From: Chrysemys picta bellii | Taxonomy: Eukaryota | Direction of reading: 5' to 3' | Length of the DNA stretch: 64,000 nt | Assembly (NCBI RefSeq): GCF_011386835.1 | Contig: NC_088794.1 | Location: 8,680,001 to 8,744,000 of the forward strand | Part shown: positions 7,744 to 57,472 of the stretch, in pieces | How positions within the stretch are numbered: the stretch's first letter is position 1 | How the letters are laid out: each line of letters starts with the position of its first letter | Translations under genes and position numbers: made by a program | Notes under the pieces: generated by a model | The model's database searches: none | Told to the model about the DNA's origin: nothing | The model's input: the letters and a program-made list of their open reading frames with translations, nothing else

Positions 7744-7779
7744 GGCCACCAGCAACTCCCGCTCCCTGTAAACGAGGAG

Positions 7780-34009: not shown

Positions 34010-37000
34010 GGGTTGGTGGAGGGGACAGTAGTGGAGGGCACAGGGGTTCCCTCCTCTGTCATTATCCCATTGATATCCAAATCTTAGTCATTGTCTGTGT
34101 CCCCTGCTTTGCCACAGGCTTGCTTGAACTCGAGGACAGGGCTCCCGTGGTGTCTGAGGGGCTCATCGCACACGGGGCTGTGGGGATCATTCCCAGTGAG
34201 CAGCCCATCTGACCTCTGCTCCTGGATGTAGATGCTGAAGTCGTTGTCCTTGATCCAGCCCAGCAGATAGGCCAGGCCACAGTCACAGCGCCAGGGGTTC
34301 CCTGCTAGGTAGACATAGGCTAATATGTGCCCCTCGGGGAAGAAGCCGCTGGGCAGAGTGCGGAGCTGGTTCCCTGACAGCCTCAGTGTCTCCAGCTCCA
34401 GCCCAGCCAACAGCCCCCGCGGCAGCTCCTCCAGGACGTTATCAGACAGATCCAGGTCCTTCAACATGGCCAGGCCCTCAAAGGCCTCTTCTGGCAGCGT
34501 CCGCAGCTGGTTCCCCCGTAGATTCAGATCCTTCAGCTTCCCCACATCCCGGAAGGCCCCTGGCAGCAGCCCTGAAATGTTGTTGTGAGCCAGGACCAGG
34601 CGAGTGAGGGCAGGCAGGCCCTGCAGTGTGGGCAGCACCCCCAGGGCATTGTGGGACAGGACCAGCTCCTGCAGCAAGGGCAGGGGGGGCCCAGTGTGCA
34701 GCGCACCCAGTGCGTTGCCTGACAGGTCCAGCTCAGCCAGCTCAGGGAGGTGCTGGAAGGCGGCAGTGGAGACGGACGCCAGGCGGTTGGAGCTGAGCAG
34801 CAGGATGCTGGTGTTCCTGGGCAGGGCAAGTGGCACCACGCTGAGCCCCTTTCCGGAGCAGTTCACCTGCAGTCGGTCCTTGATCAGGTTCATCTTGGAT
34901 GGGCATGGCTCCCCTGTAGTGGAGGGCACAGGGGTGGTTGCGGGCAGGGTGGTGGAAGGGACAGTAGTGGAGGGCACAGGGGGTCCCTCCTCTGTCATTG
35001 TCCCATTGATATCCAAGTCTGTGTCCCTGCTTTGCCGCAGGCCTGCTGGAACTCGAGGACAGGGCTCCCGTGGTGTCTGAGGGGCTCATCGCACACGGGG
35101 CTGTGGGGATCATTCTCAGTCAGCAGCCCGTCTGGCCTCTGCTCCTGGATGTAGATGCTGAAGTCGTTGTCCTTGATCCAGCCTCGCAAATAGGCCAGGC
35201 CACAGTCACAGCGCCAGGGGTTCCCTGCCAGGAAGACGAAGGCAAACATGTGGCCCTCGGGGAAGAAGCCGCCGGGCAGAGTGCGGAGCTGGTTCCCTGA
35301 CAGCCTCAGTGTCTCCAGCTCCAGCCCAACCAACAGCCCCAGCGGCAGCTCCTCCAGGGCGTTATCAGACAGGTCCAGGTCCTTCAACATGGCCAGGCCC
35401 TCAAAGGCCTCTTCTGGCAGCGTCCGCAGCTGGTTCCCCCGTAGATTCAGATCCATCAGGTTCCCCACATCCCGGAAGGCCCCTGGCAGCAGCCCTGAAA
35501 TGTTGTTGTGAGCCAGGGCCAGGCGGGTGAGGGCAGGCAGCCCCTGCAGTGTGGGCAGCACCCCCAGGGCATTGTGGGACAGGACCAGCTCCTGCAGCAA
35601 GGGAAGGGGGGGCCCAGTGTGCAGCGCACCCAGTGCGTTGCCTGACAGGTCCAGCTCAGCCAGCTCAGGGAGGTGCTGGAAGGTGGCAGTGGAGACGGAC
35701 GCCAGGCGGTTGGAGCTGAGCAGCAGGATGCTGGTGTTCCTGGGCAGGGCAAGTGGCACCACGCTGAGCCCCTTTCCGGAGCAGTTCACCTGCAGTCGGT
35801 CCTTGATCAGGTTCATCTTGGATGGGCATGGCTCCCCTGTAGTGGAGGGCACAGGGGTGGTTGCGGGCAGGGTGGTGGAAGGGACAGTAGTGGAGGGCAC
35901 AGGGGGTCCCTCCTCTGTCATTGTCCCATTGATATCCAAGTCTGTGTCCCCTGCTTTGCCGCAGGCCTGCTGGAACTCGAGGACAGGGCTCCCGTGGTGT
36001 CTGAGGGGCTCATCGCACACGGGGCTGTGGGGATCATTCTCAGTCAGCAGCCCGTCTGGCCTCTGCTCCTGGATGTAGATGCTGAAGTCGTTGTCCTTGA
36101 TCCAGCCTCGCAAATAGGCCAGGCCACAGTCACAGCGCCAGGGGTTCCCTGCCAGGAAGACGAAGGCAAACATGTGGCCCTCGGGGAAGAAGCCGCCGGG
36201 CAGAGTGCGGAGCTGGTTCCCTGACAGCCTCAGTGTCTCCAGCTCCAGCCCAACCAACAGCCCCAGCGGCAGCTCCTCCAGGGCGTTATCAGACAGGTCC
36301 AGGTCCTTCAACATGGCCAGGCCCTCAAAGGCCTCTTCTGGCAGCGTCCGCAGCTGGTTCCCCCGTAGATTCAGATCCATCAGGTTCCCCACATCCCGGA
36401 AGGCCCCTGGCAGCAGCCCTGAAATGTTGTTGTGAGCCAGGGCCAGGCGGGTGAGGGCAGGCAGCCCCTGCAGTGTGGGCAGCACCCCCAGGGCATTGTG
36501 GGACAGGACCAGCTCCTGCAGCAAGGGCAGGGGGGGCCCAGTGTGCAGCGCACCCAGTGCGTTGCCTGACAGGTCCAGCTCAGCCAGCTCAGGGAGGTGC
36601 TGGAAGGCGGCAGTGGAGACGGACGCCAGGCGGTTGGAGCTGAGCAGCAGGATGCTGGTGTTCCTGGGCAGGGCAAGTGGCACCACGCTGAGCCCCTTTC
36701 CGGAGCAGTTCACCTGCAGTCGGTCCTTGATCAGGTTCATCTTGGATGGGCATGGCTCCCCTGTAGTGGAGGGCACAGGGGTGGTTGCGGGCAGGGTGGT
36801 GGAAGGGACAGTAGTGGAGGGCACAGGGGGTCCCTCCTCTGTCATTGTCCCATTGATATCCAAGTCTGTGTCCCCTGCTTTGCCGCAGGCCTGCTGGAAC
36901 TCGAGGACAGGGCTCCCGTGGTGTCTGAGGGGCTCATCGCACACGGGGCTGTGGGGATCATTCTCAGTCAGCAGCCCGTCTGGCCTCTGCTCCTGGATGT

Positions 37001-37685
37001 AGATGCTGAAGTCGTTGTCCTTGATCCAGCCTCGCAAATAGGCCAGGCCACAGTCACAGCGCCAGGGGTTCCCTGCCAGGAAGACGAAGGCAAACATGTG
37101 GCCCTCGGGGAAGAAGCCGCCGGGCAGAGTGCGGAGCTGGTTCCCTGACAGCCTCAGTGTCTCCAGCTCCAGCCCAACCAACAGCCCCAGCGGCAGCTCC
37201 TCCAGGGCGTTATCAGACAGGTCCAGGTCCTTCAACATGGCCAGGCCCTCAAAGGCCTCTTCTGGCAGCGTCCGCAGCTGGTTCCCCCGTAGATTCAGAT
37301 CCATCAGGTTCCCCACATCCCGGAAGGCCCCTGGCAGCAGCCCTGAAATGTTGTTGTGAGCCAGGGCCAGGCGGGTGAGGGCAGGCAGCCCCTGCAGTGC
37401 GGGCAGCACCCCCAGGGCATTGTGGGACAGGACCAGCTCCTGCAGCAAGGGAAGGGGGGGCCCAGTGTGCAGCGCACCCAGTGCGTTGCCTGACAGGTCC
37501 AGCTCAGCCAGCTCAGGGAGGTGCTGGAAGGCGGCAGTGGAGACGGACGCCAGGCGGTTGGAGCTGAGCAGCAGGATGCTGGTGTTCCTGGGCAGGGCAA
37601 GTGGCACCACGCTGAGCCCCTTTCCGGAACAGTTCACCTGCAGTCGGTCCTTGATCAGGTTCATCTCGGACGGGCATGGCTCCCC
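34010..37685 (-). repeat. Coding tandem repeat, 4 x 924 bp (308 codons); module starts 37685, 36761, 35837, 34914
   Basis: Antisense ORFs recur at exact 924-bp spacing (35248/36172/37096) and 923 bp for the last. Modules 1-3 differ at only a few SNVs; module 4 is more divergent. Confidence 0.95.
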
Positions 37686-37754
37686 CAGACCCACAGCGCC
37701 AGCCACAGAGAGCAGGGCCAGGAGGGCTAGGTGAGGTGAGGTGGGGCACAGCAT
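34084..37754 (-). CDS. GP1BA: GP1BA-like locus A: signal peptide plus 4 tandem GPIb-alpha ectodomains, no TM. Frame 1 (37754-34995) gives 919 aa; a 1-bp deletion at ~35025-35027 separates module 4, which ends at TAA 34086-34084
   Basis: ATG lies 3 nt after the splice acceptor ctcccctgcag, followed by a hydrophobic leader. Each module has LRRNT (EPCPS..VNCSG), LRRs, LRRCT (GNPWRCDC..YLRGWI) and GDTDLD, aligning motif-for-motif with human GPIb-alpha (NPWLCNC, GDTDLYDYY). TM, CC and tail are absent. Confidence 0.85.
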
Positions 37755-38094
37755 GGTCTGCAGGGGAGACAAGAGCATGCTCAGGACACAGACATCACAG
37801 GGCATGTCTACACTAACCAGCTCAGACTGCAACTGAGACTTATGACTCCCCAGTCTGGAGTGCTGGGGACAACTCCCGGTGGGATATCCCACAATGGTCC
37901 CATCTACACCAACACAGCTGGTGCTGCAACAGAGTTGGGTCCCCTGAGCAGATACTAGCTCTAATAACAAGGGCTCCCTAGCTCCCCAGTGCCCTCTGTC
38001 CCATCAGGCACCTGCACCCTGACCATGCTGGGGACCAGCTACACTAACCCTGCTGGTGCTGTAACAGTGTCAGGGAGCTGCCATTAGCACCACG

Positions 38095-38291
38095 TACAAG
38101 GAGTTGACTCCCCCACACCTCCAGGCTGGACTAAACTCAAAAGGTTTGGATCAATCCCTGTAGTTTCCCTTCCTCCCAAACCCAGAACTTCTGCTCCCTT
38201 ATAGCCACGGCAGCTGGTCCAGCCAGGAACCCCCCCGGTAATTGCCACATCCATTCTCCACCTGCCTGTATCCTCTGGCCTTGCTTCAACC
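38095..38291 (-). promoter_or_regulatory. Non-coding exon 1 / core promoter of locus A, truncated upstream
   Basis: GCTATAAGGG TATA-like box near 38200; donor CTT|GTACGT near 38097; homology to the B/C promoters stops at ~38291. Confidence 0.55.
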
Positions 38292-40023
38292 CATGGCTGG
38301 GTGATCAATTCATTTTATTCCACAACTGTCTTGAAATCAACGTCTCCATTTCTTGAAACATGTGACTTAGCTTGTGAGGCCTTTGGGGGCAGGGACTGCA
38401 TTTTTATTTAGTGTTTGTACAGCCCCTATCACAGCAAGGGCCTGGGCCATGCCTGGGGCTTCTCATAGTGCTGCTCCAATATAAATAATAATACTTACAA
38501 AAAACCACATTAACAGAACTTTATTTAGGTTCCAAAGTTGAGTTCTCAGGGTTAGGAAATGCTGGGTTGTACGAACAGCCTGAACTTCACCCTCTTTGTG
38601 TGCCGGATGAGGCAGGGGGTCCTGTGGAATAAATAGCACGTGATCATGTACCATAAATAAGATTGCACCATCGCGCCCACAGCTTGGGAACAGCCACCCA
38701 TCATGACTGCCTGGGCTCAGTCTGAGAGGAAAGTGTGCTCCCAGCTGGGTTAGGCCATGATTAAACTTTGTAATATGCACAAGCCAAATGAGGCCTGGGC
38801 TACCCACAGAGCTGCAGTAGTTTAACTAATGGTAAGACTCCCAGCTCAGACACTTCTCCAATCTTCCCCTGGAGTGCTGGCAGCAGCCCCTCTGAATCAT
38901 TTGATGCTACTACTACAGACCACCACCATGGGGCACAGAGGGGACAGAGTCCCTGTTGCAGAGCTGCTGCCCCAACTCCCAGCCCCCATGCTGGGCTGGA
39001 GTTGGGGGGTGGGAGGGTTGCTCTGGCTCTCCAGACCAGGGGTTGGTCTCACCCAGAGAGGAGCAAGGATAGACCAGGAACTAGCATCTCGGGACAGGGC
39101 CCCTGCACCCACAGTGCCACACTCAGTCTCCGAGCTCCTCCACCTACCTAACCGCAGGGATGTGCCAGGCTCTGCTCCGCGGTGAAAGGCTCCCTAGGAC
39201 CTCCTGAGAATCAGAGTCAATCCCCAAGGAGCTTTTGCAATGGAGGGCACCCAGTTCTGTTGCTGTGGCAGAAACTGTCTGTCCGGGCAGATTGTAATCA
39301 GCAGCTGAATGTGCTCCTCCCCCCTGCAGCCAGCCAGCAATAGGGAGGGGAATGTGGAAGTAAAGAGCAGCCCCCAGAAATGGAATGATAACAGGATGTT
39401 CCTGGCAGGAAGGGGAAGTCTAGTGCAGCAGTTCTCACAACAAAATTTTTGGTGGCATCAGAGTGCGGCCACCAGCTCTTGCTGCTGGCCGCACTGACAC
39501 TTTTCCCTAAAATTATTGATTTTTCCTAAAGTTAATAAAGTAATATGCACATACAGTATATACATCCAAATCATTGTAGTTTATTTATGTAAGGTTTGGG
39601 GTTTTTTTGCAGACTCAATAATAAAAATCATGCACAATTATCTCTATTCTTTACTGGACCTAACAGAATAGAAACACAAATAAGGTGCTTTGCATGTTCC
39701 TGTCTTTTTTATTATTGTTTCTTTAGCTTTTTTGGTAAAAGTGGTTGTCTGTATAACAATTTTGAAGTAAATTTAAAAATGCTTTGACATAATAGAAGTC
39801 CAAATAATAATGAAAAACATGTCTGGGTGGCTTGGGTCTGGGGAGGGGAGCATAGGTACGGTTGCGGCTGCAGCTGGCCCAGGGCTCCTCCGGGCAGGTG
39901 TGTGTGTGTGTGTGGCGGGGTGGTCTTGGGGCCTTGGCCAAATGCTCTGGCTGCCGGGGGGGCTGGGGAACGCAGGCAGAAGGGTTCGAGTCGGGGACTA
40001 GCCTCCCCAAAGGGGGGCTCCAC

Positions 40024-41631
40024 TAGGGTTACCATCCGTCCGTATTTCCCCGGACATGTCCGGCTTTTGCGTCTCTATATAGCCGTCCGGGAGGAATTGG
40101 TAACAAAGTTAAAATGTCCAGGGTTTTTTTCTCCCTCGCCTCCCTCCCTCCCTTCCATGCAGAGTGCGGCTGCTGATTGGGCAGCTGTGTCGATTGAGCC
40201 GCTCCCATTGGCCTCCAGCAGCCAGAGCCCTCCCCTGCTCCCCCCTCCCTCTGTCTGCAGCCCTGTGTAACACACAAACCGACCCACCGGGCAGCGTGTT
40301 TTGCCTACACATGGAGCCAGAATGGTAAGGGGAGTCCGGGGGAGGGGGCAGTCAGGGAGCGGGGGAGTGTTGGATGGGTCCCCGGCCTCCACCTGCCACC
40401 CCCCCTCTGCACGTCGTCCCGCCCGTGGACTCCCCCTCCCTTCCTGCCTCTCCCTTGCCTGCTTGTGCTGCCAGAGCCAGCAGCAACTGCTGTCTGCTGC
40501 CCCCGGGTCCTAGCATCCCCCATCCACTAATGGGAAGACAGGCTGCCCTTGCCCTGCCCTTCCACCCTATCCCTGAGCCTCTCCAACGCCCCAAACCCCT
40601 CAGCCCCAGCTCTCATCCCCCTGCACCCTAATCCTCTGCCCCAGCCCTGAGCCTCCTCCTGCATCATAAACCCCTCATCCCCAGCCCCAGCCCTCATCCC
40701 CCGCACCCTAATCCTCTGCTCCATCCCTGAGCCCCCTCCTGCATCATGAACCCCTCATCCCCAGCCCCAGCCCTCATCCCCCGCACCCTAATCCTCTGCC
40801 CCAGCCCTGAGCCTCCTCCTGCATCATAAACCCCTCATCCCCAGCCCTCATCCCCCGCACCCTAATCCTCTGCTCCATCCCTGAGCTCCCTCCTGCATCA
40901 TGAACCCCTCATCCCCAGCCCCAGCCCTCATCCCCCGCACCCTAATCCTCTGCCCCAGCCCTGAGCCTCCTCCTGCATCATAAACCCCACATCCCCAGCC
41001 CCAGCCCTCATCCCCCGCACCCTAATCCTCTGCTCCATCCCTGAGCCCCCTCCTGCATCATGAACCCCTCATCCTCAGCCCCACAGCCCTCACCCCTGCA
41101 TCCCCTCCTATCCCCAAACTCCCTCCCCCTTCCCACACATCCCCTTCTGCCCACAAACTCCCTCCCAAAGCCTGCACCCCCTCCATTTGCATCGCCTCTC
41201 ACCCCCAAACTCCATCCCAGAGCCTGCACCCCTCATCCCCTCCTGCACACCCACCCCCTGCCCCAGCCCGGAGCCTGCACCCAGCACCCAAACTCTATCC
41301 CAGAGCCTGCACCCTGCACCCCTCCTGCACCCTAATCCCCAGCCCAGGACCTGCGCCCCAGACCTCCTCCCCGCACCCAACCCCCCTCCCAGAGCCTTAG
41401 GCAGGTGGGGGGGGGGGTTCTGGGCACCACCAAAATTTCTACAACCCTGCCTCCCATGTGAGTGGATAAGAGTCGGGGCAGTCAGGGGACAAGAAGCAGG
41501 GGGGGGGGTTGGGGTTCTGAGGGGGGCAGTCAGGGGGTGGGAAGTGGGAGGGAGTGGATGGGGGGCGGGACTAGGGCGGGGCTTCCCCCCCCAGTGTCCT
41601 CTTTTTTGATTGTGGAAATATGGTAACCCTA
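40024..41631. mobile_element. hAT (Blackjack-like) non-autonomous element nested in 39426-42186
   Basis: TIR TAGGGTTACCAT / ATGGTAACCCTA; exact 8-bp TSD GGCTCCAC. Confidence 0.9.
40590..41090. repeat. C-rich minisatellite, unit ~70 bp, inside the nested hAT
   Basis: Repeated ccccagccccagccctcatcccccgcaccctaatcctctg(c/t)..ccctgagc..cctcctgcatcat(a/g)aacccctcat. Confidence 0.9.
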
Positions 41632-42522: not shown

Positions 42523-42586
42523 TCCCACCATGTGGCGCCAAAAACCACCTCCCTTAAGGTGCTATGCTACCAACTGAGCTAGCCAC
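42523..42586 (-). pseudogene. tRNA-Lys(CTT)-like pseudogene (duplicate of 28886-28952)
   Basis: Reverse complement GGCTAGCTCAGTTGGTAGCATAGCACCTTAAGGGAGGTGG... Confidence 0.6.
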
Positions 42587-43428: not shown

Positions 43429-43498
43429 GAGGGCAGGGATTGAAACCCAGCAGCTTCTTACAGACAAAACAGGAGTTCTGCCACTGAGCTATATTCCC
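43429..43498 (-). pseudogene. Degenerate tRNA-like sequence (duplicate of 29845-29914)
   Basis: Reverse complement GGGAATATAGCTCAGTGGCAGA...CTGGGTTTCAATCCCTGCCCTC. Confidence 0.55.
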
Positions 43499-47792: not shown

Positions 47793-49179
47793 CAGGGGTC
47801 TCAAACTCAAATGACCATGAGGGCCACATGAGGACTAGTACATTGGCCAGAGGGCCGCATTACTGACACCTCCCCGCATGCCTCCCTCGGCCCCGCCCCC
47901 ACTCCACCCCTTCCATGAGGCCCTGCCCCTGCCCCGCCTCTTCCCACCCCTTCCCTGCCCCCATTCCAACCCCTTCCCCCAAATCCCCACCCCAACTCTG
48001 TCCCCTCCCTGCCCCCAGGGGGTGCAGGAGGGGTGTGGTGGGAGCTCAGGGCAGGGAGTTGGGGTGTGGGGTGCAGGAGGGGTGAGGGGTACAACAAGGG
48101 CTCAGGGTGCAGGGTGCGGCAAGGGGATCAGGGCAGTGGGTTGGGGTGCAAGAGGACTGCGGGGTGCGGCATGGGGCTCAGGGCAGTGGGTTGGGATGCA
48201 GGAAGGGTGCGGGGTGAGGCAGGGGGTCGGGGTGCAGGTTACGGCAGGGGGTCAGGGTGCAGGGTGCGGCATGGGGCTCAGGGCAGTGGGTTGGGATGCA
48301 GGAGGGGTGCAGGGTGTGGCAGGGGGCTCAGGGCAGGGGGTTCGGCTGCAGGAGGGGTTCGGGGAGCAGGATCTGGCCCAGCGCGTACTGGGGGCAGAGC
48401 AGGGTCCCTGCCTGCTGCCTACCTGCCCTGCCCCCGCAAGAGGCTGGAACGTGGGGAAGGGGGGGCGGGTCAGGGTGCGGCAGGGGGATCAGGGCAGTGG
48501 GTTGGGGTGCAAGAGGAGTGTGGGCTGCGGCATGGGGCTCAAGGCAGTGGGTTGGGATGAGGCAGGGGGTCGGGGTGCAGGAGGGGTGCAGGGTATGGCA
48601 GGGGGTCAGGGTGCAGGGTGCGGCATGGGGCTCAGGGCAGTGGGTTGGGATGCAGGAAGGGTGCGGGGTGAGGCAGGGGGTCGGGGTGCAGGAGGGGTGC
48701 AGGGTATGGCAAGGGGTCAGGGTGCAGGGTGCAGCATGGGGCTCAGGTCAGTGGGTTGGGATGCAGGAGGGGTTCGGGGAGCAGGATCTGGCCCAGCGCG
48801 TACTGGGGGCAGGGCAAGGTCCCTGCCTGCTGCCTACCTGCCCTGCCCCCGCAAGAGGCTGGAACGTGGGGAAGGGGGGCGGAGGGGCTGTATGTTTCTG
48901 TTGCTTGAGGCACCGCCTCCAGCAGCTCCCATTGGCCGCGGCCAATTGGAGCTGCTGGGGGCGCTGCCTGAAGCAACAGCCACACACAGCCGCTCCGCCC
49001 CCCCTTCCCCACGTTCCAGCCTTTTCCCGGAGCTGCGGAGGGCAGGGCAGGGCAGGCAGGGAGCATGCCCTGCCCCTGGTGCATGTCCGGCCGGAGCCGC
49101 TCTGGTAAATACTGGGGGAGGGCGGGGGGCTCGCGGGCCGCAGAAAATCACCCTGCGGGCCACGTGTTCGAGACCCCTG
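47793..49179. mobile_element. hAT (Charlie-like) non-autonomous element with expanded G-rich minisatellite
   Basis: TIR CAGGGGTCTCAAAC / GTTCGAGACCCCTG; exact 8-bp TSD CTCTAGAG. Confidence 0.9.
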
Positions 49180-49861
49180 CTCTAGAGCATGCTGTCTCTG
49201 AGCCACCTACAAGGCAGGGGAACTGGCTGGCCCAGACAGGTCAGGGAATAGGATATGGGGCCTTTCCCATCTGGGGGAGCATGCAAAACTGAGCATCATT
49301 ATTCACCTCCAGCAAAGACCACAAGCAGCCTGGTGTTTTTGAACTGTGACCTAGCTGCATCCAGGGAAGGTCTTTATTCTGTGATTAGCCAATGGAACTA
49401 CCTGCCACAGGATTCAAAGTAGGATCAACATTTCTGTGGATTATAAGAACAGCCAGAGACCTGATACAGAGAGGAGGAAATATCGACAAGGCTCTGCCAG
49501 GGCACAAGCCAGCCCTGAACTGCCTGGTTTTAAGGGGAAACTGCCCCTCTGGACAGTTATTCCAGATCTGGCCTCTGCAGCAGGGGTGTGCATGGGGGAG
49601 CTCTACAGGGTTAGAAGAGCCCATTGGTCTGAGGCAGGAGGGGCATCTGGGAGCCAGAATATATGGGTTCTACATATATTAAGGGACCCTCCCAGCTACT
49701 GCAGCAGTGGGAGGAATCTTGTCCCCGGTGCACAGTGGGTGAGATCACAGCAACAGAACTGGAATTAGAACCCAGGCGTCCTGGCGAGCAGTACCCCCTG
49801 CCTTAGCCCCCAGGACCCTGCTCCCCAGCCCCAACAATAGAACCCAGGTGTCCTGCCCCCC

Positions 49862-51745
49862 TTAGAGGGTGGTGGTTGCATATTTCACCCTGACAGCCCT
49901 GATAGCTGCTTCCCCCCTGTCTAGGCTGTAGGCGGAGGGAGCCCGCCAGGGGCCCAGCCCCCCCACACTCAGCAGCCTCCTGGTAACACGTCGGAAGGAG
50001 GGCACAGGGGGGTCGCGGTGGATCCGCAGCTCCTTGGTGGTGCGGAAGGTTGGGGGCTCTATGGGGCTCCTGAAGCTGCTAAGATGCATCATGGGGGGTG
50101 CTGCCCCCTCCCCCTTTCTCAGCAGCTGGTACCGCACCAGCCGTGCCCCCGGGGGACTCCTCAGAGCTGGGCGATACCAGCCCAGATATACCCAGCCCAT
50201 CCAGCCCAGGAGAGCCAGCATGGGCAGCAGCAGCAGCAGCAAGGAGGCCAGGTAAAGCGCCAGGTGCAGCAGGCAGCAATGGGCTAGCACCCAGTGGCCC
50301 CACTGTGGGCCCGCCCTGCCCTGCTGATGACCAATGGGCATCGCTGGGGGTGGGGTGGGGCATGTGCAGAGGCGGGGAGCCCCCATCGGAGGGGGTGGCT
50401 GGTGGCAGGGGGTGATGTGGAGAGGGCTGGTATGGAAGGGAGGCGAGGGGATAAGGGAGGTGGTGGGAGTCATGGGGGTGCTGGGGAGCCATGGGGGTGC
50501 AAGTTCTGGGGCAGTAGTGGGAGGCATGGTGGTGGTTGGGGGCAAGGTGGTGGAGGGAGAAGTAGTGGGAGGCACAGGGGTGGTTGGGTGTAGAGTGGTG
50601 GAGGGGGCAGTAGTGGGAGGCACAGGAGTGGTTGGGGGCTGGTTGGTGGAGGGGGCAATAGTGGGGGTCACAGGAGTGGTTGGGGGCTGGGTGGTGGAGG
50701 GGGCAATAGTGGGGGGCACAGGAGTGGTTGCGGGCAGGGTGGTGGAGAAGGCAATAGTGGGGGGTACAGGGTTAGTTGGGGGCAAGGTGGTGGAGGGGAC
50801 AGTAGCAGAAGGCACTGGGGTTCCCTCCTCTGTCATTGTCCCATTGATATCCAAGTATGTGTCCCCTGCTTTGCTGCAGGCCTGCTGGAACTCGAGGACA
50901 GGGCTCCCGTGGTGTCTGAGGGGCTCATCGCACACGGGGCTCTGGGGATCATTCTCAGTCAGCAGCTCGTCTGACCTCTGCTCCTGGATGTAGATGCTGA
51001 ACTCATTCTCCTCAATCCAGCCCCGCAGATAGGCCAGGCCACAGTCACAGCGCCAGGGGTTCCCTGCTAGGTAGACATAGTCTAATGTGTGCCCCTCGGG
51101 GAAGAAGCCGCTGGGCAGAGTGCGGAGCTGGTTCCCTGACAGCCTCAGTGTCTCCAGCTTCAGCCCAGCCAACAGCCCCCGCGGCAGCTCCTCCAGGGCG
51201 TTATCAGACAGGTCCAGGTCCTTCAACATGGCCACGCCCTCAAAGGCCTCTTCTGGCAGCGTCCGCAGCTGGTTCCCCCGTAGATTCAGCTCCGTCAGGT
51301 TCCCCACATCCCGGAAGGCCCCTGGCAGCAGCCCTGAAATGTTGTTGTGAGCCAGGACCAGGCGGGTGAGGGCAGGCAGGCCCTGCAGTGTGGGCAGCAC
51401 CCCCAGGGCATTGTGGGACAGGACCAGCTCCTGCAGCAAGGGCAGGGGGGGCCCAGTGTGCAGCGCACCCAGTGCATTGCCTGACAGGTCCAGCTCAGCC
51501 AGCTCCGGGAGGTGCTGGAAGGCGGCAGTGGAGACGGACGCCAGGCGGTTGGAGCTGAGCAGCAGGATGCTGGTGTTCCTGGGCAGGGCAAGTGGCACCA
51601 CGCTGAGCCCCTTTCCGGAGCAGTTCACCTGCAGTCGGTCCTTGATCAGGTTCATCTCGGACGGGCATGGCTCCCCTGGACCCACAGCGCCAGCCACAGA
51701 GAGCAGGGCCAGGAGGGCTAGGTGAGGTGAGATGGGGCACAGCAT
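49862..51745 (-). CDS. GP1BA: Platelet glycoprotein Ib alpha-like, locus B, intact, 627 aa
   Basis: Single coding exon with ATG just after the acceptor. Signal peptide, LRRNT, LRRs, LRRCT, Pro/Thr mucin stalk, juxtamembrane CC (AHCCLLHLALY vs human FCCLLPLGFY), TM, PTFR motif and C-terminal ...SLDRGEAAIRAVRVKYATTTL (human ..[22 protein letters not shown]). AATAAA on the - strand near 49375. Confidence 0.93.
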   Translation of the reverse strand: MLCPISPHLALLALLSVAGAVGPGEPCPSEMNLIKDRLQVNCSGKGLSVVPLALPRNTSILLLSSNRLASVSTAAFQHLPELAELDLSGNALGALHTGPPLPLLQELVLSHNALGVLPTLQGLPALTRLVLAHNNISGLLPGAFRDVGNLTELNLRGNQLRTLPEEAFEGVAMLKDLDLSDNALEELPRGLLAGLKLETLRLSGNQLRTLPSGFFPEGHTLDYVYLAGNPWRCDCGLAYLRGWIEENEFSIYIQEQRSDELLTENDPQSPVCDEPLRHHGSPVLEFQQACSKAGDTYLDINGTMTEEGTPVPSATVPSTTLPPTNPVPPTIAFSTTLPATTPVPPTIAPSTTQPPTTPVTPTIAPSTNQPPTTPVPPTTAPSTTLHPTTPVPPTTSPSTTLPPTTTMPPTTAPELAPPWLPSTPMTPTTSLIPSPPFHTSPLHITPCHQPPPPMGAPRLCTCPTPPPAMPIGHQQGRAGPQWGHWVLAHCCLLHLALYLASLLLLLLPMLALLGWMGWVYLGWYRPALRSPPGARLVRYQLLRKGEGAAPPMMHLSSFRSPIEPPTFRTTKELRIHRDPPVPSFRRVTRRLLSVGGLGPWRAPSAYSLDRGEAAIRAVRVKYATTTL

Positions 51746-52084
51746 GGTCTGCACGGGAGACAAGAGGATGCTCAGGACACAGACATCACAGGGCATGTCT
51801 ACACTAACCAGCTCAGACTGCAACTGAGACTTGTGACTCCCCAGTCTGGAGTGCTGGGGACAACTCCCGGTGGGATATCCCACAATGGTCCCATCTAGAC
51901 CAACCCAGCTGGTGCTGCAACAGAGTTGGGTCCCCTGAGCAGATACTAGCTCTAATAACAAGGGCTCCCTAACCCCCCAGTGCCCTCTGTCCCATCAGGC
52001 ACCTGCACCCTGACCACACTGGGGACCAGCTACACTAACCCTGCTGGTGCTGTAACAGTGTCAGGGAGCTGCCATTAGCACCAT

Positions 52085-52300
52085 GGACAAGGAGTTGACT
52101 CCCCCACACCTCCAGGTTGGACTAAACTCAAAAGGTTTGAATCTATCCCTGTAGTTTCCTTTTCACCTAATCCCGTATCTTCTGCTCCCCTTATAGCCAC
52201 GGCAGCTGGTCCAGCCAGGAGACGCCCCCCCGCCGCCAGGTAATTACCACATCCAGTCCCCACCTGCCTCTATCACCTGCCTTTGCTTCAACCACTTCCC
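52085..52300 (-). promoter_or_regulatory. Exon 1 / promoter of locus B with TATA-like, GATA and Ets motifs
   Basis: GCTATAAGGG near 52195; TGATAG at ~52270-52275; GGAAGT at 52294-52299. The exon 1 donor is weak (CTT|GTCCAT). Confidence 0.6.
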
Positions 52301-52374
52301 CCAGTGGCATCTGCGTGAGGGGAGCACGATTAAAGCATCTGGCATTTAGTGCCTTCAGCACCAGGTGAGGGATC

Positions 52375-53040
52375 ACTGTGTAAACAGCCTCTGTGCCCCA
52401 CTCCAGAGGGGGTACATCCCTGGATTAAACAGCTTCCCCGCACCCGGAGTTTCCTGTACAAACAGCTGCCCCACCCCAGAGGTGGCTGCATCTCACTGAT
52501 GCTTACCCGTCCCTATGGACTCACCTGGGGTCTCTGCAGGGGTTGCTCTCCCACCTGTGTCGCCCTCACTCCCAGCTGTGGATTGAGAGGTTGCTCTGGG
52601 GGTAGATTTTCCCACTGTGCTGACTGACTGCATCAGGCATCCTGAGCCCAACCTCATATCAGCCTCTGCAGCTGCTGGGGGGTGGGTATGTGGTTTTCTG
52701 TGATATCAAACAGACACTGATCCCGCCTTCCCCATTCCTACCCTCAAGGCATTAAAAGCCCCCATAGAAGTCACATCAGAGTCCAGCCAGATTACAGGTG
52801 GGGACTGCTTTCTGATCCACTCCATAAACTATTGCCCCACTCCAGAAACTGTACCACAGAACCGGGCAAGGGATCCCCATACAAATAGCAGGTATACTCC
52901 GGAAGAGGACACATCTTAGTGCGAGGCAAATGATGGTTGTACAACCAGCTGTCCCACCCCAGAGGCATCCGCATTACAGCACTGGGCAAGAGCTCCAATT
53001 ATAAACAGCCTTTGTGCCTTTCCCCAGAGGCGGTTGCATC
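52375..53040 (+). repeat. Dispersed degenerate copies of an AmnSINE/L2-tail-like motif (TAAACAGC...CCAGAGGTGGCTGCAT); duplicated at 58105-58770, more copies at 59170-59345
   Basis: Copies near 52379, 52426, 52458, 52880, 52940 and 53000; resemblance to the AmnSINE1 3' tail from recall. Confidence 0.55.
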
Positions 53041-53400
53041 TAGATTAATAAATTCCAAGGCCAGAAGGGACCACTGTGATCATTTAGTCTGACCTCCTGG
53101 CTAACACAGGCCAGACACCTCCTCCCAAATAATCCCTAGAGCAGAGCTTGTAGAAAAACATCCAATCTTGATTTATAAATTGTCAGTGATGGAGAATCCA
53201 CCTTTGGTAATTGGTTCCAGTGGTTAATTACTCTCCCCATGCAAAATTGAGGCCTTATTTCCAGTCTGAATTTATCTAGCTTCCACTTCTAGCCATTGGA
53301 TCCTGTTCTACCTTTCTCTGCTAGTTTGAAGAACACATGATCAAAGATTTGTTGCCCATATAGATACTTATAGAGGTAACCAAGTCACCCCTTAACCATC
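53041..53400 (-). mobile_element. Old CR1 3' end (duplicate at ~58770-59135)
   Basis: aaggccagaagggaccactgtgatcatttagtctgacctcctg...ccttatttccagtctgaatt is the antisense of a CR1 3' region. Confidence 0.75.
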
Positions 53401-53994
53401 TCTTTGTGTGTATGTTAGTTACAGAGGAAGTAGAAATTAGAAAGTGCTCTAGCCGCAGTTTAATGAATGAAGTGGGAAATCAGACACTTATATAGGAAAT
53501 GGAAGCAGAACTCGAAGCCATTAAACAATCATACAACTATCCACTCTTCTCTTTCCTATCAGATGCTGCTGCAAATCAGCTGCAAGGTGGGGGAACTGGC
53601 CATCTTAGCGTGCTGGGGACTGGGAGATGGGGCATTTCCCCTCTAGAGAGCACTGACCTTGGCTCCCATCTGGCCCCAGGGCAGGAGACTTGCTGGCTCA
53701 GGGCAGCGGGGAGTGGGACATGCAGCCTCTCTTTTCTAGTGGGTGCCAGCTTCGATCTAGCCTCAGGGCAGGGGATTGGCAGGCTGAGGGGAGTGGGGAG
53801 CAGGACATAGGGCCTTTCCTTTCTAGGAGGCGCCAGCTCCAGTCCAGCCCCAGAGTGGGAAATTGGCTGGCTAAGGGCGGTAGGAGATTAGGCATTTCCC
53901 CTCTAGAGGGCACTGGCTTATGTAACCCCAGGGGAGGGGATCTAGCCATCCCAGAGTGGTAGGGATTGGGATATGGGGTGTTTTCGCTCTAGAG

Positions 53995-54917
53995 CAGGGG
54001 TCTCAAACTCAAATGACCATGAGGGCCACATGAGGACTAGTACATTGGCCCAAGGGCCGCATTACTGACACCTCCCCCCCGCCACCCTCAGCCCCGCCCC
54101 CACTCCACCCCTTCCATGAGGCCCCGCCCCTGCCCTGCCTCTTCCCACCCCTTCCCTGCCCCCATTCCAACCCCTTCCCCCAAATCCCCACCCCACTCTG
54201 CCCCCTCCCTGCCCCCAGGGGGTCCAGGAGGGGTGTGGTGGGGGCTCAGGGCAGGGAGTTGGGGTGTGGGGTGCAGGAGGGGTGAGCAGTACAGCAAGGG
54301 GTCAGTGTGCGGCAGGGGGATCAGGGCAGTGGGTTGGGATGCAGGAAGGGTGTGGGGTGAGGCAGGGGGTCGGGGTGCAGTGTATGGCAGGGGGTCAGGG
54401 TGCAGGGTGCGGCATGGGGCTCAGGGCAGTGGGTTGGGATGCAGGAGGGGTGCATGGTGTGGCAGGGGGCTCAGGGCAGGGGTTCGGCTGCAGGAGGGGT
54501 TCGGGGGGCAGGATCTGGCCCAGCGCGTACCGGGGGCAGGGCAGGGTCCCTGCCTGCCTTCCCTGCCCCCGCGCTGCTCCGGGAAGAGGCTGGAACGTGG
54601 GGAAGGGGGGGCGGAGGGGCTGTGTGTTTCTGTTGCTTGAGGCACCGCCTCCAGCAGCTCTCATTGGCCGCAGTTACCCGTTCCCGGCCAATTGGAGCTG
54701 CTGGGGGCACTGCCTGAAGCAACAGCCACACACAGCCGCTCCGCCCCCCTTCCCCACGTTCCAGCCTTTTCCTGGAGCTGCGCCGGGCAGGGCAGGCAGG
54801 CAGGCAGGGAGCATGCCCTGCCCCCGGTGCATGTCCGGCCGGAGCCGCTCTGGTAAACACTGGGGGGCTCACGGGCTACAGAAAATCACCCTGCAGGCCA
54901 CGTGTTCGAGACCCCTG
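53995..54917. mobile_element. Duplicate of the hAT at 47793, with shorter minisatellite
   Basis: Same TIRs and CTCTAGAG TSD; 923 bp vs 1387 bp. Confidence 0.9.
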
Positions 54918-55597
54918 CTCTAGAGCATGCTGTCTCTGAGCCACCTACAAGGCAGGGGAACTGGCTGGCCCAGACAGGTCAGGGAATAGGATATGGGGCT
55001 TTCCCATCTGGGGGAGCATGCAAAACTGAGCATCATTATTCACCTCCAGCAAAGACCACAAGCAGCCTAGTGTTTTTGAACTGTGACCTAGTTGCATCCA
55101 GGGAAGGTCTTTATTCTGTGATTAGCCAATGGAACTACCTGCCACAGGATTCAAAGTAGGATCAACATTTCTGTGGATTATAAGAACAGCCAGAGACCTG
55201 ATACAGAGAGGAGGAAATATCGACAAGGCTCTGCCAGGGCACAAGCCAGCCCTGAACTGCCTGGTTTTAAGGGGAAACTGCCCCTCTGGACAGTTATTCC
55301 AGATCTGGCCTCTGCAGCAGGGGTGTGCATGGGGGAGCTCTACAGGGTTAGAAGAGCCCATTGGTCTGAGGCAGGAGGGGCATCTGGGGGCCAGAATATA
55401 TGGGTTGTACATATATTAAGGGAGCCTCCCAGCTACTGCAGCAGTGGGAGGAATCTTGTCCCCGGTGCACAGTGGGTGAGATCACAGCAACAGAACTGGA
55501 ACTAGAACCCAGGCGTCCTGGCGAGCAGCACCCCCTGCCTTAGCCCCCAGGACCCTGCTCCCCAGCCCCAGCAATAGAACCCAGGTGTCCTGCCCCC

Positions 55598-57472
55598 CTA
55601 GAGGGTGGTGGTTGCATATTTCACCCTGACCGCCCCGATAGCTGCTTCCCCCCTGTCTAGGCTGTAGGCGGAGGGAGCCCGCCAGGGGCCCAGCCCCCCC
55701 ACACTCAGCAGCCTCCTGGTAACACGTCGGAAGGAGGGCACAGGGGGGTCGCGGTGGATCCGCAGCTCCTTGGTGGTGCGGAAGGTTGGGGGCTCTATGG
55801 GGCTCCTGAAGCTGCTAAGATGCATCATGGGGGGTGCTGCCCCCTCCCCCTTTCTCAGCAGCTGGTACCGCACCAGCCGTGCCCCCGGGGGACTCCTCAG
55901 AGCTGGGCGATACCAGCCCAGATATACCCAGCCCATCCAACCCAGGAGAGCCAGCATGGGCAGCAGCAGCAGCAGCAAGGAGGCCAGGTAAAGCGCCAGG
56001 TGCAGCAGGCAGCAATGGGCTAGCACCCAGTGGCCCCACTGTGAGCCCGCCCTGCCCTGCTGACGCCCAGCCACGGGCATCGCTGGGGGTGGGGTGGGGC
56101 ATGTGCAGAGGCGGGGAGCCCCCATCGGAGGGGGTGGCTGGTGGCAGGGGGTGATGTGGAGAGGGCTGGTATGGAAGGGAGGCGAGGGGATAAGGGAGGT
56201 GGTGGGAGTCATGGGGGTGCTGGGGAGCCGTGCGGGTGCTGGGGATGCAGGTTCTGGAGCAGTAGTGGGGGGCAGGGTGGTGGCAGGGACAGTAGTGGGG
56301 GGCACGGGAGTAGTTGGGGGCAGGGTGGTGGGGGGCACAGGGGTGGTTGGGGGCAGGGTGGTGGAAGGGGCAGTGGTGGGGAGTTTGGGGCTGGTTGGGG
56401 GCAGGGTGGTGCAGGGGGCAGTAGTTGGGGGCACAGGGGTGGTTGGGGGCAGGGTGGTGGAGGGGGCAGTAGTGGGGGGCCCAGGGGTGGTTGGGGGCAG
56501 AGTGGTGGAGGGGACAGTAGTGGAGGGCACAGGGGTTCCCTCCTCTGTCATTGTCCCATCGATATCCAAATCTTCATCATTGTCTGTGTCCCCTGCTTTG
56601 CCACAGGCCTGCTTGAACTCGAGGACAGGGCTCCCGTGATGTCTGAGGGGCTCATCGCACACGGGGCTCTGGGGATCATTCTCAGTCAGCAGCCCGTCTG
56701 GGCTCTGCTCCTGGATGTAGATGCTGAAGTCGTTGTCCTTGATCCAGCCTCGCAAATAGGCCAGGCCACAGTCACAGCGCCAGGGGTTCCCTGCCAGGAA
56801 GACGAAGGCAAACATGTGGCCCTCGGGGAAGAAGCCGCCGGGCAGAGTGCGGAGCTGGTTCCCTGACAGCCTCAGTGTCTCCAGCTCCAGCCCAACCAAC
56901 AGCCCCAGCGGCAGCTCCTCCAGGGCGTTATCAGACAGGTCCAGGTCCTTCAACATGGCCAGGCCCTCAAAGGCCTCTTCTGGCAGCGTCCGCAGCTGGT
57001 TCCCCCGTAGATTCAGATCCATCAGGTTCCCCACATCCCGGAAGGCCCCTGGCAGCAGCCCTGAAATGTTGTTGTGAGCCAGGGCCAGGCGGGTGAGGGC
57101 AGGCAGGCCCTGCAGTGTGGGCAGCACCCCCAGGGCATTGTGGGACAGGACCAGCTCCTGCAGCAAGGGCAGGGGGGGCCCAGTGTGCAGCACCCCCAGG
57201 GCATTGTGGGACAGGTCCAGCTCAGCCAGCTCCGGGAGGTGCTGGAAGGTGGCAGTAGAGACGGACGCCAGGCGGTTGGAGCTGAGCAGCAGGATGCTGG
57301 TGTTCCTGGGCAGGGCAAGTGGCACCACGCTGAGCCCCTGTCCGGAGCAGTTCACCTGCAGTCGGTCCTTGATCAGGTTCATCTCGGACGGGCATGGCTC
57401 CCCTGGACCCACAGCGCCAGCCACAGAGAGCAGGGCCAGGAGGGCTAGGTGAGGTGAGGTGGGGCACAGCAT
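55598..57472 (-). CDS. GP1BA: Platelet glycoprotein Ib alpha-like, locus C, intact, 624 aa
   Basis: Same architecture as locus B with an uninterrupted ORF; TM and tail are nearly identical to B. Confidence 0.93.
   Translation of the reverse strand: MLCPTSPHLALLALLSVAGAVGPGEPCPSEMNLIKDRLQVNCSGQGLSVVPLALPRNTSILLLSSNRLASVSTATFQHLPELAELDLSHNALGVLHTGPPLPLLQELVLSHNALGVLPTLQGLPALTRLALAHNNISGLLPGAFRDVGNLMDLNLRGNQLRTLPEEAFEGLAMLKDLDLSDNALEELPLGLLVGLELETLRLSGNQLRTLPGGFFPEGHMFAFVFLAGNPWRCDCGLAYLRGWIKDNDFSIYIQEQSPDGLLTENDPQSPVCDEPLRHHGSPVLEFKQACGKAGDTDNDEDLDIDGTMTEEGTPVPSTTVPSTTLPPTTPGPPTTAPSTTLPPTTPVPPTTAPCTTLPPTSPKLPTTAPSTTLPPTTPVPPTTLPPTTPVPPTTVPATTLPPTTAPEPASPAPARLPSTPMTPTTSLIPSPPFHTSPLHITPCHQPPPPMGAPRLCTCPTPPPAMPVAGRQQGRAGSQWGHWVLAHCCLLHLALYLASLLLLLLPMLALLGWMGWVYLGWYRPALRSPPGARLVRYQLLRKGEGAAPPMMHLSSFRSPIEPPTFRTTKELRIHRDPPVPSFRRVTRRLLSVGGLGPWRAPSAYSLDRGEAAIGAVRVKYATTTL

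Follow-up and report, generated by a model that had tools for sequence, protein, structure and literature searches.

A tandem cluster of GP1BA-like loci

Three GP1BA-like loci, all on the minus strand, lie in the 64,000-nucleotide stretch of the Chrysemys picta bellii genome analyzed here (the window), and we consider it probable that they form a lineage-specific tandem paralogue cluster evolving by duplication and gene conversion. A gene-conversion mosaic explains the clustering of paralogue differences toward the C-terminal end of the ectodomain better than adaptive change does. The GP1BA product is the platelet or thrombocyte glycoprotein Ib-alpha (GPIb-alpha), the receptor for von Willebrand factor (VWF). 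The three loci and six ectodomains counted in the initial annotation were confirmed from open reading frames (ORFs), translations, and a module alignment, in which all six modules run from EPCPS to ACGKAG over 270 codons with zero indels. RefSeq holds models for all three loci in the chromosome assembly. Loci B and C are intact and membrane anchored, while locus A is anchorless.

The anchorless locus A

Locus A consists of a signal peptide and tandem ectodomain modules, with features as follows:

34084 to 37754, minus strand: locus A, with its ATG at 37754, a signal peptide, and four tandem ectodomain modules separated by short PT-rich linkers
36873 to 37682, minus strand: module A1, from translation
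35949 to 36758, minus strand: module A2, from translation
35025 to 35834, minus strand: module A3, from translation
34102 to 34911, minus strand: module A4, from translation
35025 to 35027, minus strand: run of three G, where the A1/A2 and A2/A3 junctions have four (three junctions compared)
33946 to 34086, minus strand: TAA stop after A4 (34084 to 34086, where C has GAA) and residual C terminus

The modules repeat with a period of 924, 924, and 923 nt. The short G run is a 1-nt homopolymer deletion that puts A4 out of frame with A3, and the resulting ORF ends in a stop codon at 34995 to 34997. RefSeq represents the locus by a LOW QUALITY protein (P0121, 1,227 aa). Neither a mucin region nor a transmembrane segment (TM) or tail was found in locus A by ORFs, translations, or self-comparison, and the sequence upstream of it holds no counterpart of the exon 1 or promoter of B. 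In frame past the A4 stop, a leftover of the original C terminus persists, ending in STNPISHHPEPANLPPWGWNEAVAP and a stop; this remnant matches the end of Malaclemys P0120 exactly and is similar to the end of Chelonia P0015. Locus A is probably an older anchorless paralogue whose ectodomain was amplified as a 924-nt tandem module. Modules A1 to A3 are 99 to 100% identical to one another, a near-identity that could come in part from assembly or polishing.

The anchored loci B and C

Loci B and C lie in two segmental duplication units:

55598 to 57472, minus strand: locus C, 624-aa GP1BA-like coding sequence, intact and in one exon, from ORF and translation
49862 to 51745, minus strand: locus B, 627-aa GP1BA-like coding sequence, intact and in one exon, domain architecture as in C
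54448 to 59145, minus strand: duplication unit with locus C, paralogous to 48720 to 53407, from self-BLAST
48720 to 53407, minus strand: duplication unit with locus B, from self-BLAST and regional divergence
51749 to 52524, minus strand: 5′ untranslated region (5′UTR) intron of B, 776 nt, GT..AG, ending 3 nt before the ATG
about 52525 to 52696, minus strand: exon 1 of B, from a contig of probable RNA run X17

The two units share 94.1% identity across 4,740 nt in self-BLAST, and the segmental duplication enclosing B and C is put at 5.7 kb. Regional divergence in the flanks is 0.026 to 0.036 (0.033 over 2,790 nt). Protein C, which has an exact match on a Chrysemys picta bellii contig in the sequence collection, comprises a signal peptide, LRRNT, eight leucine-rich repeats (LRRs), LRRCT, an acidic linker, a PT-rich mucin region, a juxtamembrane CC, TM, and a cytoplasmic tail. 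The mucin regions of B and C are built of PT-rich 48-nt repeats, and their CC, TM, and tail are colinear with the C terminus of GP1BA from a mammal, Condylura (E = 7e-7); the tail has no matching PDB peptide. Conserved PTFR and C-terminal motifs characterize the cytoplasmic tail of GPIb-alpha. The gene structure is of GP1BA type, with an uninterrupted coding ORF and, in B, a 5′UTR intron seen in one contig. In this contig, from run X17, position 51748 is joined directly to 52525, and the intron left out between them has ends that read CT..AC on the plus strand (donor CAG|GTGAGT, acceptor TGCAG|ACCATG). Both B and C are covered by contigs from probable RNA runs, which point to transcription of the two genes. 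Those of run X15 that match B (records 9 and 10) do so with 0 to 4 differences, carry B-private codons, and cover HTLDYVYL and EENEF. Loci B and C probably both encode functional thrombocyte receptors, whose binding surfaces would differ somewhat.

It is very improbable that the family is overstated through misassembly, with B and C being alleles or collapsed haplotypes set in tandem and the identity of A1 to A3 artefactual. The near-identity of these modules, the homopolymer deletion at the A3/A4 junction, and the RefSeq flag on the A model would all fit such an error, as would the strong differences from proteins of an older assembly of the same subspecies (14 to 19 residues in A modules and 21 in B). 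However, the flanks of B and C are 3.3% apart and differ by indels, the two genes have unequal numbers of mucin repeats, and a separate exon 1 and promoter region accompany each of them. Furthermore, the single run X15 contains contigs specific to B as well as contigs specific to C, and multimodule and anchored forms are both encoded, independently, in the older Chrysemys assembly, in Malaclemys, and in Mauremys.

The GPIb-alpha fold

The ectodomain is predicted to have a genuine GPIb-alpha fold. Human GPIb-alpha chains in the PDB match the whole domain in phmmer (E = 4e-50), and an AlphaFold model of it (pLDDT, 91.9) returned GPIb-alpha structures at Foldseek ranks 1 to 17 (TM, 0.86 to 0.95), followed by the Nogo receptor (0.70). 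Cysteines at module positions 3, 18, 209, 211, 248, and 266 are invariant across 28 sequences. Alignment to human GPIb-alpha and the model place codons 106, 128, 199, and 201 on concave beta-strands. The beta-switch equivalents are as follows:

56678 to 56722, minus strand: beta-switch-equivalent hairpin of C, codons 227 to 241, aligned with human residues 227 to 241
50951 to 50995, minus strand: beta-switch-equivalent hairpin of B, counterpart of that of C

In the model, the hairpin strands span residues 228 to 234 and 237 to 242, which are module codons 227 to 233 and 236 to 241.

Within the GPIb-IX-V complex, mammalian GPIb-alpha serves as the receptor for VWF-A1 and thrombin. At ~40% sequence identity, the turtle ectodomain superposes on the human one with a TM-score of 0.88 to 0.95 and an rmsd of ~1.5 Å, and it shares with mammalian GP1BA the LRRNT beta-finger, eight LRRs, LRRCT, and beta-switch hairpin. 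Loci B and C further resemble the mammalian gene in their acidic linker, PT-rich mucin stalk with variable repeat number, juxtamembrane CC, TM, colinear tail, single-exon coding sequence, and 5′UTR intron. Unlike mammals, which have one locus, the turtle has three, one of them anchorless with four tandem ectodomains. Human GPIb-alpha carries sulphated tyrosines in the anionic region after LRRCT. In contrast, the acidic stretch at this place in B and C (DTDNDEDLDIDGTMTEEG in C) contains zero tyrosines, so a human-type sulphotyrosine site for thrombin and VWF is absent.

A probable mosaic of exchanged segments

Differences between B and C had been counted by hand at about 26 residues, about 20 of them in the C-terminal half, with 12 to 14 synonymous changes. 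Our alignment yielded 26 residue differences (25 in the ectodomain and 1 in the signal peptide), of which 18 fall in codons 136 to 270, and Nei-Gojobori counts of 26.5 nonsynonymous and 13.5 synonymous differences. The TM and tail are, as had been noted, almost identical, with 3 of 349 nt differing (0.9%) and two amino acid changes after GRAG. The differences are clustered beyond chance (P = 0.004, maximum chi-square permutation) and lie in LRR4 to LRR8 and LRRCT, including the beta-switch loop, in keeping with the C-terminal LRRs and LRRCT named in the initial annotation. Many alter charge (e.g., E/K172, K/E221, G/E236, E/G240, L/R165, and A/D198). All three series of motif variants described earlier are present, namely, NLMDLNL/NLTELNL/KLKDLNL, HMFAFVFL/HTLDYVYL/HILAYVYL, and KDNDF/EENEF with RPDGL/RSDEL/RSDGL, except that C reads SPDGL and RPDGL belongs to A1 to A3.

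Two types of middle segment were delimited:

56672 to 57100, minus strand: type I middle segment of C, codons 101 to 243, LRR4 to beta-switch, 1 of 429 nt different from A1 to A3
50945 to 51373, minus strand: type II middle segment of B, codons 101 to 243

Over codons 1 to 100, C stands apart from A1 to A4 and B, which are all of a single sequence type; over codons 101 to 243, C joins A1 to A3 in type I and B joins A4 in type II. Sites at which A1 agrees with B and not C outnumber the reverse 9 to 0 in nt 1 to 300, against 1 to 26 in nt 300 to 730 (Fisher P = 1e-7), and the pattern switches once more past codon 243. Within codons 101 to 243, A1 and C have no synonymous difference and one nonsynonymous difference, against a divergence of 5.6% between the introns of the two loci. 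The type II segment of B has 14 sites in common with A4 against C and A1 to A3, together with 12 private changes (10 nonsynonymous and 2 synonymous). Synonymous divergence between B and C is 0.035 in the N-terminal half and 0.098 in the C-terminal half, the latter well above the 0.033 of the flanks (P = 0.002). Interlocus conversion is thus indicated both by the switch of signal along the alignment and by tracts far more alike than their flanks.

We propose that duplication and recurrent gene conversion or unequal exchange between loci shape this family, which would make each module a mosaic. The C-terminal clustering of B-C differences would then mark the edges of conversion tracts differing in age and not an accelerated adaptive zone; paralogue differences would gather at the ligand-binding end mainly because segments were copied between paralogues.

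Tests of selection

The initial annotation proposed diversification of ligand specificity, with the caution that selection was unproven and the ratio of nonsynonymous to synonymous change probably below 1. The caution was borne out, and positive selection on the GP1BA copies is not demonstrated. Pairwise Nei-Gojobori dN/dS among modules ranges from 0.2 to 0.8, with no pair above 1. Maximum-likelihood omega for B versus C is 0.35 to 0.70 across estimates (including 0.52 overall, 0.70 for codons 101 to 243, and 0.48), and omega = 1 was not rejected for this pair. These values fit neutrality or relaxed constraint. The proposal itself is not supported: of the outcomes that the initial annotation had named as refuting it, those on dN/dS and on the placement of variable sites were obtained, and that on the age of the multicopy state was obtained in part (see below).

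An alternative that we regard as unlikely is diversifying selection after duplication, in which a coevolving ligand (VWF A1, venom C-type lectins, or blood parasites) acts on LRR4 to LRR8 and the beta-switch and also shields this segment from homogenization. In codons 101 to 243, B and C diverge by 0.061 at nonsynonymous sites, above the flank value of 0.033, and by only 0.068 at synonymous sites, giving an omega of ~0.7 to 0.9. For a folded domain that binds ligands, such a value is high, and it would leave room for omega >1 at a subset of surface sites. The changes private to B fit neutrality and exceed the expectation under omega = 0.3 (P = 0.015), many B-C changes alter charge, and the LRR core is spared (1 of 32 positions variable). 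Variable codons 233, 234, 236, and 240 of the hairpin align with the human beta-switch, the region of the platelet-type von Willebrand disease mutations G233, D235, and M239 (PMC9006298). Against this view, no comparison gives omega >1, synonymous divergence is raised in the same segment, and the beta-switch codons have four nonsynonymous and two synonymous changes, which again gives an omega of ~0.7.

The placement of variable sites bears on the same question. By AlphaFold and human mapping, they are not significantly enriched on the concave face (7/40 versus 25/230, P = 0.29), and concave-face enrichment over lineages has a combined P of 0.63. Enrichment in the beta-switch is marginal (4/15, P = 0.087), the concave face and beta-switch together give P = 0.058, and 21 of the 32 variable sites lie outside both. 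Within-species copy differences are nevertheless enriched in the beta-switch when Chelonia, Mauremys, and this window are combined (P = 1.7e-4), and this concentration in three turtle lineages is the remaining hint of selection. However, most of the variable residues (26 of 32) are variable in a set of nine other turtle sequences as well (odds ratio, 8.2; P = 5e-7), and the beta-switch loop is the fastest-evolving part between species, with 12 of 15 positions variable, as expected of a weakly constrained loop. Under the conversion mosaic, amino acid changes in the middle segment would accrue at about 0.5 to 0.9 of the synonymous rate on surface positions that vary between species. Their location on such exposed positions, with the LRR core spared, fits weak constraint on exposed residues.

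The high omega might also reflect redundancy, with one anchored copy, most likely B, drifting toward loss under relaxed constraint. We judge this improbable. Omega values of 0.5 to 0.9 are in keeping with it, and B has the most private amino acid changes (its unique residues include V147, D198, and EENEF). Yet the ORF of B is complete and retains every cysteine and LRR core residue, its TM and tail are only two residues from those of C, contigs from probable RNA runs cover its private codons, with the 5′UTR intron apparently spliced out in one, and Malaclemys retains a B-type orthologue (P0005).

Comparison with known families and other turtles

Duplicates such as the alpha-globins and RHD/RHCE are examples of families under interlocus conversion and concerted evolution. 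Like them, the turtle paralogues are arranged in tandem, have site patterns that switch along the gene, contain tracts far closer than their flanks, and are closer within a species than orthologues are between species. Unlike in those families, exchange here would involve a ligand-binding LRR domain, which has also been amplified inside one gene.

The variable lymphocyte receptors (VLRs) of lampreys and hagfish diversify by copying of LRR cassettes, a somatic, deaminase-driven assembly that targets concave-face residues. The turtle modules share the LRRNT-LRR-LRRCT scaffold with VLRs, whose structures are the next neighbors after GPIb-alpha and the Nogo receptor (TM, 0.65 to 0.78), whereas exchange in the turtle would be germline and evolutionary, involves few copies, and has no significant concave-face bias. 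The likeness is an analogy and implies no membership. A relationship of GPIb to VLRs has been discussed (PMC6058257).

Comparison with other reptiles indicates that multicopy GP1BA is older than the emydids. Chelonia mydas has one full-length gene and one anchorless gene, the latter with the 3′ junction of locus A. Malaclemys has this junction as well, and its presence in all three turtles points to a single old origin. Crocodilians probably have two GP1BA paralogues. In comparisons of protein sequences only, the two Chelonia genes, one anchored and one anchorless, share 98% identity, against 89% between Chelonia and Chrysemys, and the Mauremys modules group together; paralogues within species are thus closer than orthologues between species, as in concerted evolution. 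Similarly, LETLRL is common to all six modules of the window, in contrast to the LDKL[SW]L of related emydid sequences.

Organization of the GP1BA-like cluster

The GP1BA-like cluster is real, and its two membrane-anchored members, loci B and C, are intact. There are zero N in the window, and the exact B and C proteins are present in the public collection on a 156.6-Mb Chrysemys picta bellii contig. Together with the RefSeq LOW QUALITY model of locus A (P0121, 1227 aa) in the same collection, this indicates that the genes had already been modelled automatically. No paper on the expansion was found in the literature searched. The loci and duplication units are as follows, in window positions.

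Loci and duplication units of the GP1BA-like cluster
33946 to 37754, minus strand: locus A together with its residual C-terminal sequence, start ATG at 37754, with four tandem ectodomain modules (A1 to A4) spaced 924, 924 and 923 nt start to start
49862 to 51745, minus strand: locus B, 627 aa
55598 to 57472, minus strand: locus C, 624 aa
48720 to 53407: duplication unit containing B
54448 to 59145: duplication unit containing C, a 4.7-kb copy of the B unit, 94.1% identical

All six ectodomain modules (A1 to A4, B, and C) are exactly 270 codons long, running from EPCPS to ACGKAG with zero indels, and the coding sequences of B and C are single-exon. Upstream, locus A has only ~540 nt of intron in common with the B and C units. 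On the 3′ side of the A modules, the sequence switches to what in C sits 1.7 kb beyond the stop codon, and A is without a mucin region, transmembrane segment (TM), and tail because of this jump. The modules and lesions of locus A were read from the assembly sequence only. Locus A is broken twice, in both cases in a linker and outside the modules. First, the G run at 35025 to 35027 has lost 1 nt, which leads to ...GKAGTQTWISMGQ* after module 3. Second, a GAA-to-TAA change at 34084 to 34086 follows module 4, past which the original C-terminus (...NPISHHPEPANLPPWGWNEAVAP*) remains in frame. In an older Chrysemys assembly, the model likewise terminates in ...IWISMGQ* past module 3, via another small deletion.

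The ectodomain matched human GPIb-alpha structures over its full length (E = 4e-50). An AlphaFold model of C, with a 28-sequence alignment as input, had a pLDDT of 91.9, and the best 17 Foldseek hits of this model against the PDB were all GPIb-alpha (TM-score 0.86 to 0.95, rmsd of ~1.5 Å), followed by the Nogo receptor and VLRs (0.65 to 0.78). Concave beta-strands lie at LRR positions 3 to 5 of the model, and module codons 227 to 241 form a beta-hairpin aligned to the human beta-switch, a loop that contains the platelet-type VWD sites W230, G233, D235, and M239 (PMC9006298).

After the ectodomain, B and C continue through an acidic linker without tyrosine and then 48-nt PT-rich repeats, followed by a juxtamembrane CC, the TM, and the tail. 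In BLASTP, the tail of B/C aligned up to the extreme C-terminus of a mammalian GP1BA (E = 7e-7), and a search of the cytoplasmic tail against the PDB returned chance matches only. The GPIb-alpha cytoplasmic domain has been said to be absent from archosaurs and turtles (PMC4486697), a claim that the cluster corrects for turtles. The full TM and tail in both B and C are colinear with a mammalian GP1BA (55601 to 56020 in C), and the same C-terminus appears in the consensus of the 28 aligned sequences, with bird, crocodilian, and lizard proteins among them. The mucin regions are made of 48-nt (16-aa) PT-rich repeats, with ~6.2 copies in B (50508 to 50805) and ~4.4 in C (56259 to 56536), and are the most divergent stretch of the duplication unit (up to 19% per 200 nt). 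The macroglycopeptide of human GP1BA carries a VNTR, which the difference in repeat number between B and C parallels.

Probable transcription of B and C

Three probable RNA runs have contigs over the B and C coding regions and none over 51930 to 52329, a stretch at which a DNA run shows normal depth. A single contig connects 51748 with 52525. The 776 nt that it skips are bounded by CT..AC on the plus strand, or GT..AG when read in the direction of the gene. The skipped segment is a 5′UTR intron of B, ending 3 nt before the ATG; human GP1BA likewise has a 5′UTR intron. In the coded read run X15, contigs with 0 to 4 differences carry B-private codons (HTLDYVYL and EENEF), and a 122-nt contig equals C at both sites separating C from A1 to A3. 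Evidence of this kind, contigs from coded runs, carries no readout of expression level or transcript ends. Exon 1 of B and its promoter region (52400 to 53000) have a 96% copy upstream of C (58132 to 58728) and none upstream of A (window position 38291). Locus A retains the splice acceptor TGCAG/ACCATG, and its RefSeq model P0121 begins with MWFFT, implying a different first exon for A; the upstream exon so implied has no match anywhere in the window.

Gene conversion and the clustering of differences

The differences between B and C match the ~26 residues counted in the initial annotation: 25 are in the ectodomain and 1 is in the signal peptide, with 18 in codons 136 to 270, where the annotation had put ~20 in the C-terminal half. 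Its figure of ~12 to 14 synonymous changes agrees with Nei-Gojobori counts of 13.5 synonymous and 26.5 non-synonymous, every motif variant that it quoted is present, and the TM and tail are near-identical, as it described (3/349 nt differ). The clustering of the differences is also beyond chance (maximum chi-square permutation p = 0.004). This concentration toward the C-terminus is mainly a gene-conversion mosaic over weakly constrained surface residues.

The 58 variable nucleotides across the modules are arranged in blocks. C is the outlier against A1 to A4 and B in nt 1 to 300, while in nt 300 to 730 there are 14 sites at which C and A1 to A3 (type I) differ from B and A4 (type II), with 12 changes private to B and 9 to A4; beyond nt 730, the pattern changes again. 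For the triplet A1, B, and C, site counts shift from 9:0 in the first block to 1:26 in the second (Fisher p = 1e-7). In codons 101 to 243, only 1/429 nt separates A1 from C, even though their introns just upstream differ by 5.6%; the intron differences are 6.2% for A-B and 2.6% for B-C. The near-identity of A1 and C in these codons is a recent conversion tract. Over the same codons, B-C divergence is 0.068 at synonymous and 0.061 at non-synonymous sites, in line with the non-coding divergence of A from B/C. By halves of the module, B-C synonymous divergence is 0.098 in the C-terminal half, significantly above the 0.033 of the non-coding flank (2790 nt; p = 0.002), and 0.035 in the N-terminal half. 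Since the segment is older at silent sites, it has a different history, and a separate selection regime need not be invoked. The main value of the cluster is as a clear case of concerted evolution mimicking localised diversification.

We also considered whether types I and II are ancient lineages common to other turtle families, which was unsupported, as the tree of codons 101 to 243 is a polytomy. Type I sequences (C, A1 to A3, and the C protein of the older Chrysemys assembly) form a derived clade (support 98/97) apart from sea turtles.

Tests for selection

The initial annotation had proposed diversification of ligand specificity, as in an arms race, for which evidence is weak at present: omega exceeded 1 in no comparison, as that annotation itself suspected of its N/S ratio, and the variable sites are not significantly enriched on the concave face (7/40 positions, p = 0.29). 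For B versus C, Nei-Gojobori omega was 0.69 overall; the N-terminal half gave 0.80 and the C-terminal half 0.60. Maximum likelihood (GY94, F3x4) gave 0.52 overall (p = 0.069 versus omega = 1), 0.70 for codons 101 to 243 (p = 0.44 versus omega = 1), and 0.48 for codons 136 to 270. In comparisons across species, which used protein sequences only, 26 of the 32 variable residues were also variable in a set of nine further turtle sequences (odds ratio 8.2, p = 5e-7). The LRR core has a single variable position. The beta-switch is variable at 4/15 positions (p = 0.087), and the remaining 21 variable residues are spread over convex and loop positions, the LRRNT, and other parts of the LRRCT.

There are hints of selection nonetheless. 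Non-synonymous divergence in codons 101 to 243 exceeds flank divergence, and omega values of 0.7 to 0.9 are high for a folded binding domain with a spared core. B-private changes number 10 non-synonymous versus 2 synonymous, which is neutral-like, yet above the expectation for omega = 0.3 (p = 0.015). Differences between copies within a species also concentrate in the beta-switch (3/6 in Chelonia, 6/36 in Mauremys, and 4/32 in the window; combined p = 1.7e-4). However, 12/15 beta-switch positions vary between species too, the changes in this loop within the window are 4 non-synonymous and 2 synonymous, and low constraint accounts for the pattern equally well. These data neither establish nor exclude adaptive diversification, for which the beta-switch offers the best test site.

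Age and taxonomic distribution of the family

Chelonia mydas has two proteins from one contig, an anchored protein of 664 aa and an anchorless protein of 347 aa, which are 98% identical. The anchorless protein ends ...STNPISHHPEPANLPPWG, and the same junction terminates a three-module protein in Malaclemys and is found in the window, in frame, right after the TAA of A4. A junction common to all three indicates that the split between anchored and anchorless genes predates the divergence of emydids and sea turtles, and the high similarity within species shows long-term concerted evolution.

Multi-module genes are found in the older Chrysemys assembly, Malaclemys, and Mauremys. In the Mauremys reevesii protein P0002, each of three modules opens with a complete signal-peptide-like sequence (…DSETMLCPTSPHLALL…), and the Mauremys modules cluster with tortoise sequences. 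Given that this repeat unit includes a signal peptide, unlike the emydid unit, module amplification in Mauremys was probably independent of that in emydids. In crocodilians, an Alligator mississippiensis protein of 345 aa (P0083, "GP1BA isoform X2") has 74% identity with that of A. sinensis, whereas the A. sinensis and Crocodylus proteins (P0013 and P0014) are 82% identical; P0083 branches outside the latter pair (support 94/92) and probably marks a second, older GP1BA-like paralogue. Birds and lizards gave one cluster each in the protein search, where clustering was at 90% identity, and hence these are not locus counts.

Mosaic-like sequences in other individuals

Contigs on B (51114 to 51731) from read runs X17 and X16 carry K125, K127, D128, and L147 (KLKD/L147), and an X15 contig on B carries L165, V169, and E172, all of which are states of other paralogues. 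The X17 form may extend into the signal peptide and spliced 5′UTR, via separate contigs overlapping at 51702 to 51731. This B-like patchwork is suggestive of mosaic alleles or extra copies, or else of chimeric contigs or paralogue cross-mapping, as these are de Bruijn contigs, which can be chimeric. A contig at B from run X1 was rejected as a polymorphism; it is a cross-mapped paralogue that has type I states throughout. Proteins of the older Chrysemys assembly differ from those of the window by 3 residues in C, 21 in B, and 14 to 19 in each A module; such differences could stem from diversity between haplotypes, copy-number variation, or errors in the assembly.

In haemostasis, GP1BA is regarded as a single-copy gene, and the domain that binds its ligands is targeted by drugs and in disease. 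With two intact anchored receptors, an anchorless paralogue of several ectodomains, and segments still being exchanged among the copies, the cluster is a natural experiment on how much variation the VWF-binding surface, beta-switch included, can take. We can only speculate, and consider it rather improbable, that the emydid cluster is a germline cassette-shuffling system. Here, the anchored genes and the anchorless gene's tandem modules would often convert one another, so that mosaic forms of the thrombocyte VWF receptor would segregate as alleles differing in patches, for example in LRR5, LRR6, LRR8, and the beta-switch. A blood-borne antagonist would keep these alleles through balancing or diversifying selection, and the secreted multi-ectodomain paralogue might act as donor reservoir or decoy. 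Such shuffling is hinted at by the KLKD/L147 and L165-V169-E172 patches in B-like contigs of other individuals, the strong protein differences between the two Chrysemys assemblies, and the beta-switch hot spot in three lineages.

Surroundings of the loci

Several features flank the three loci.

Features around the GP1BA-like loci
22839 to 23534, minus strand: C2H2 zinc-finger ORF downstream of A
26224 to 26997, minus strand: SCAN-domain ORF downstream of A
40593 to 41232: GC-rich minisatellite array between A and B, 5′ of A
48098 to 48779: GC-rich minisatellite array on the 3′ side of B
54297 to 54500: GC-rich minisatellite array on the 3′ side of C
52330 to 52529, 52930 to 53329, and 53930 to 54329: peaks of DNA-run word depth

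In a metaclust protein, P0061, a SCAN domain is fused to a Chelonia-like GP1BA ectodomain, suggesting that sea turtles have the same neighbourhood. A Pfam scan of flanking ORFs at 2 to 16 kb returned no matches. The minisatellite arrays have periods of 25 to 234 nt, with one edging each duplication unit, and may be substrates for unequal exchange. Word depth at the peaks is ~900 to 17000, versus ~30 elsewhere, which indicates high-copy interspersed repeats between B and C.
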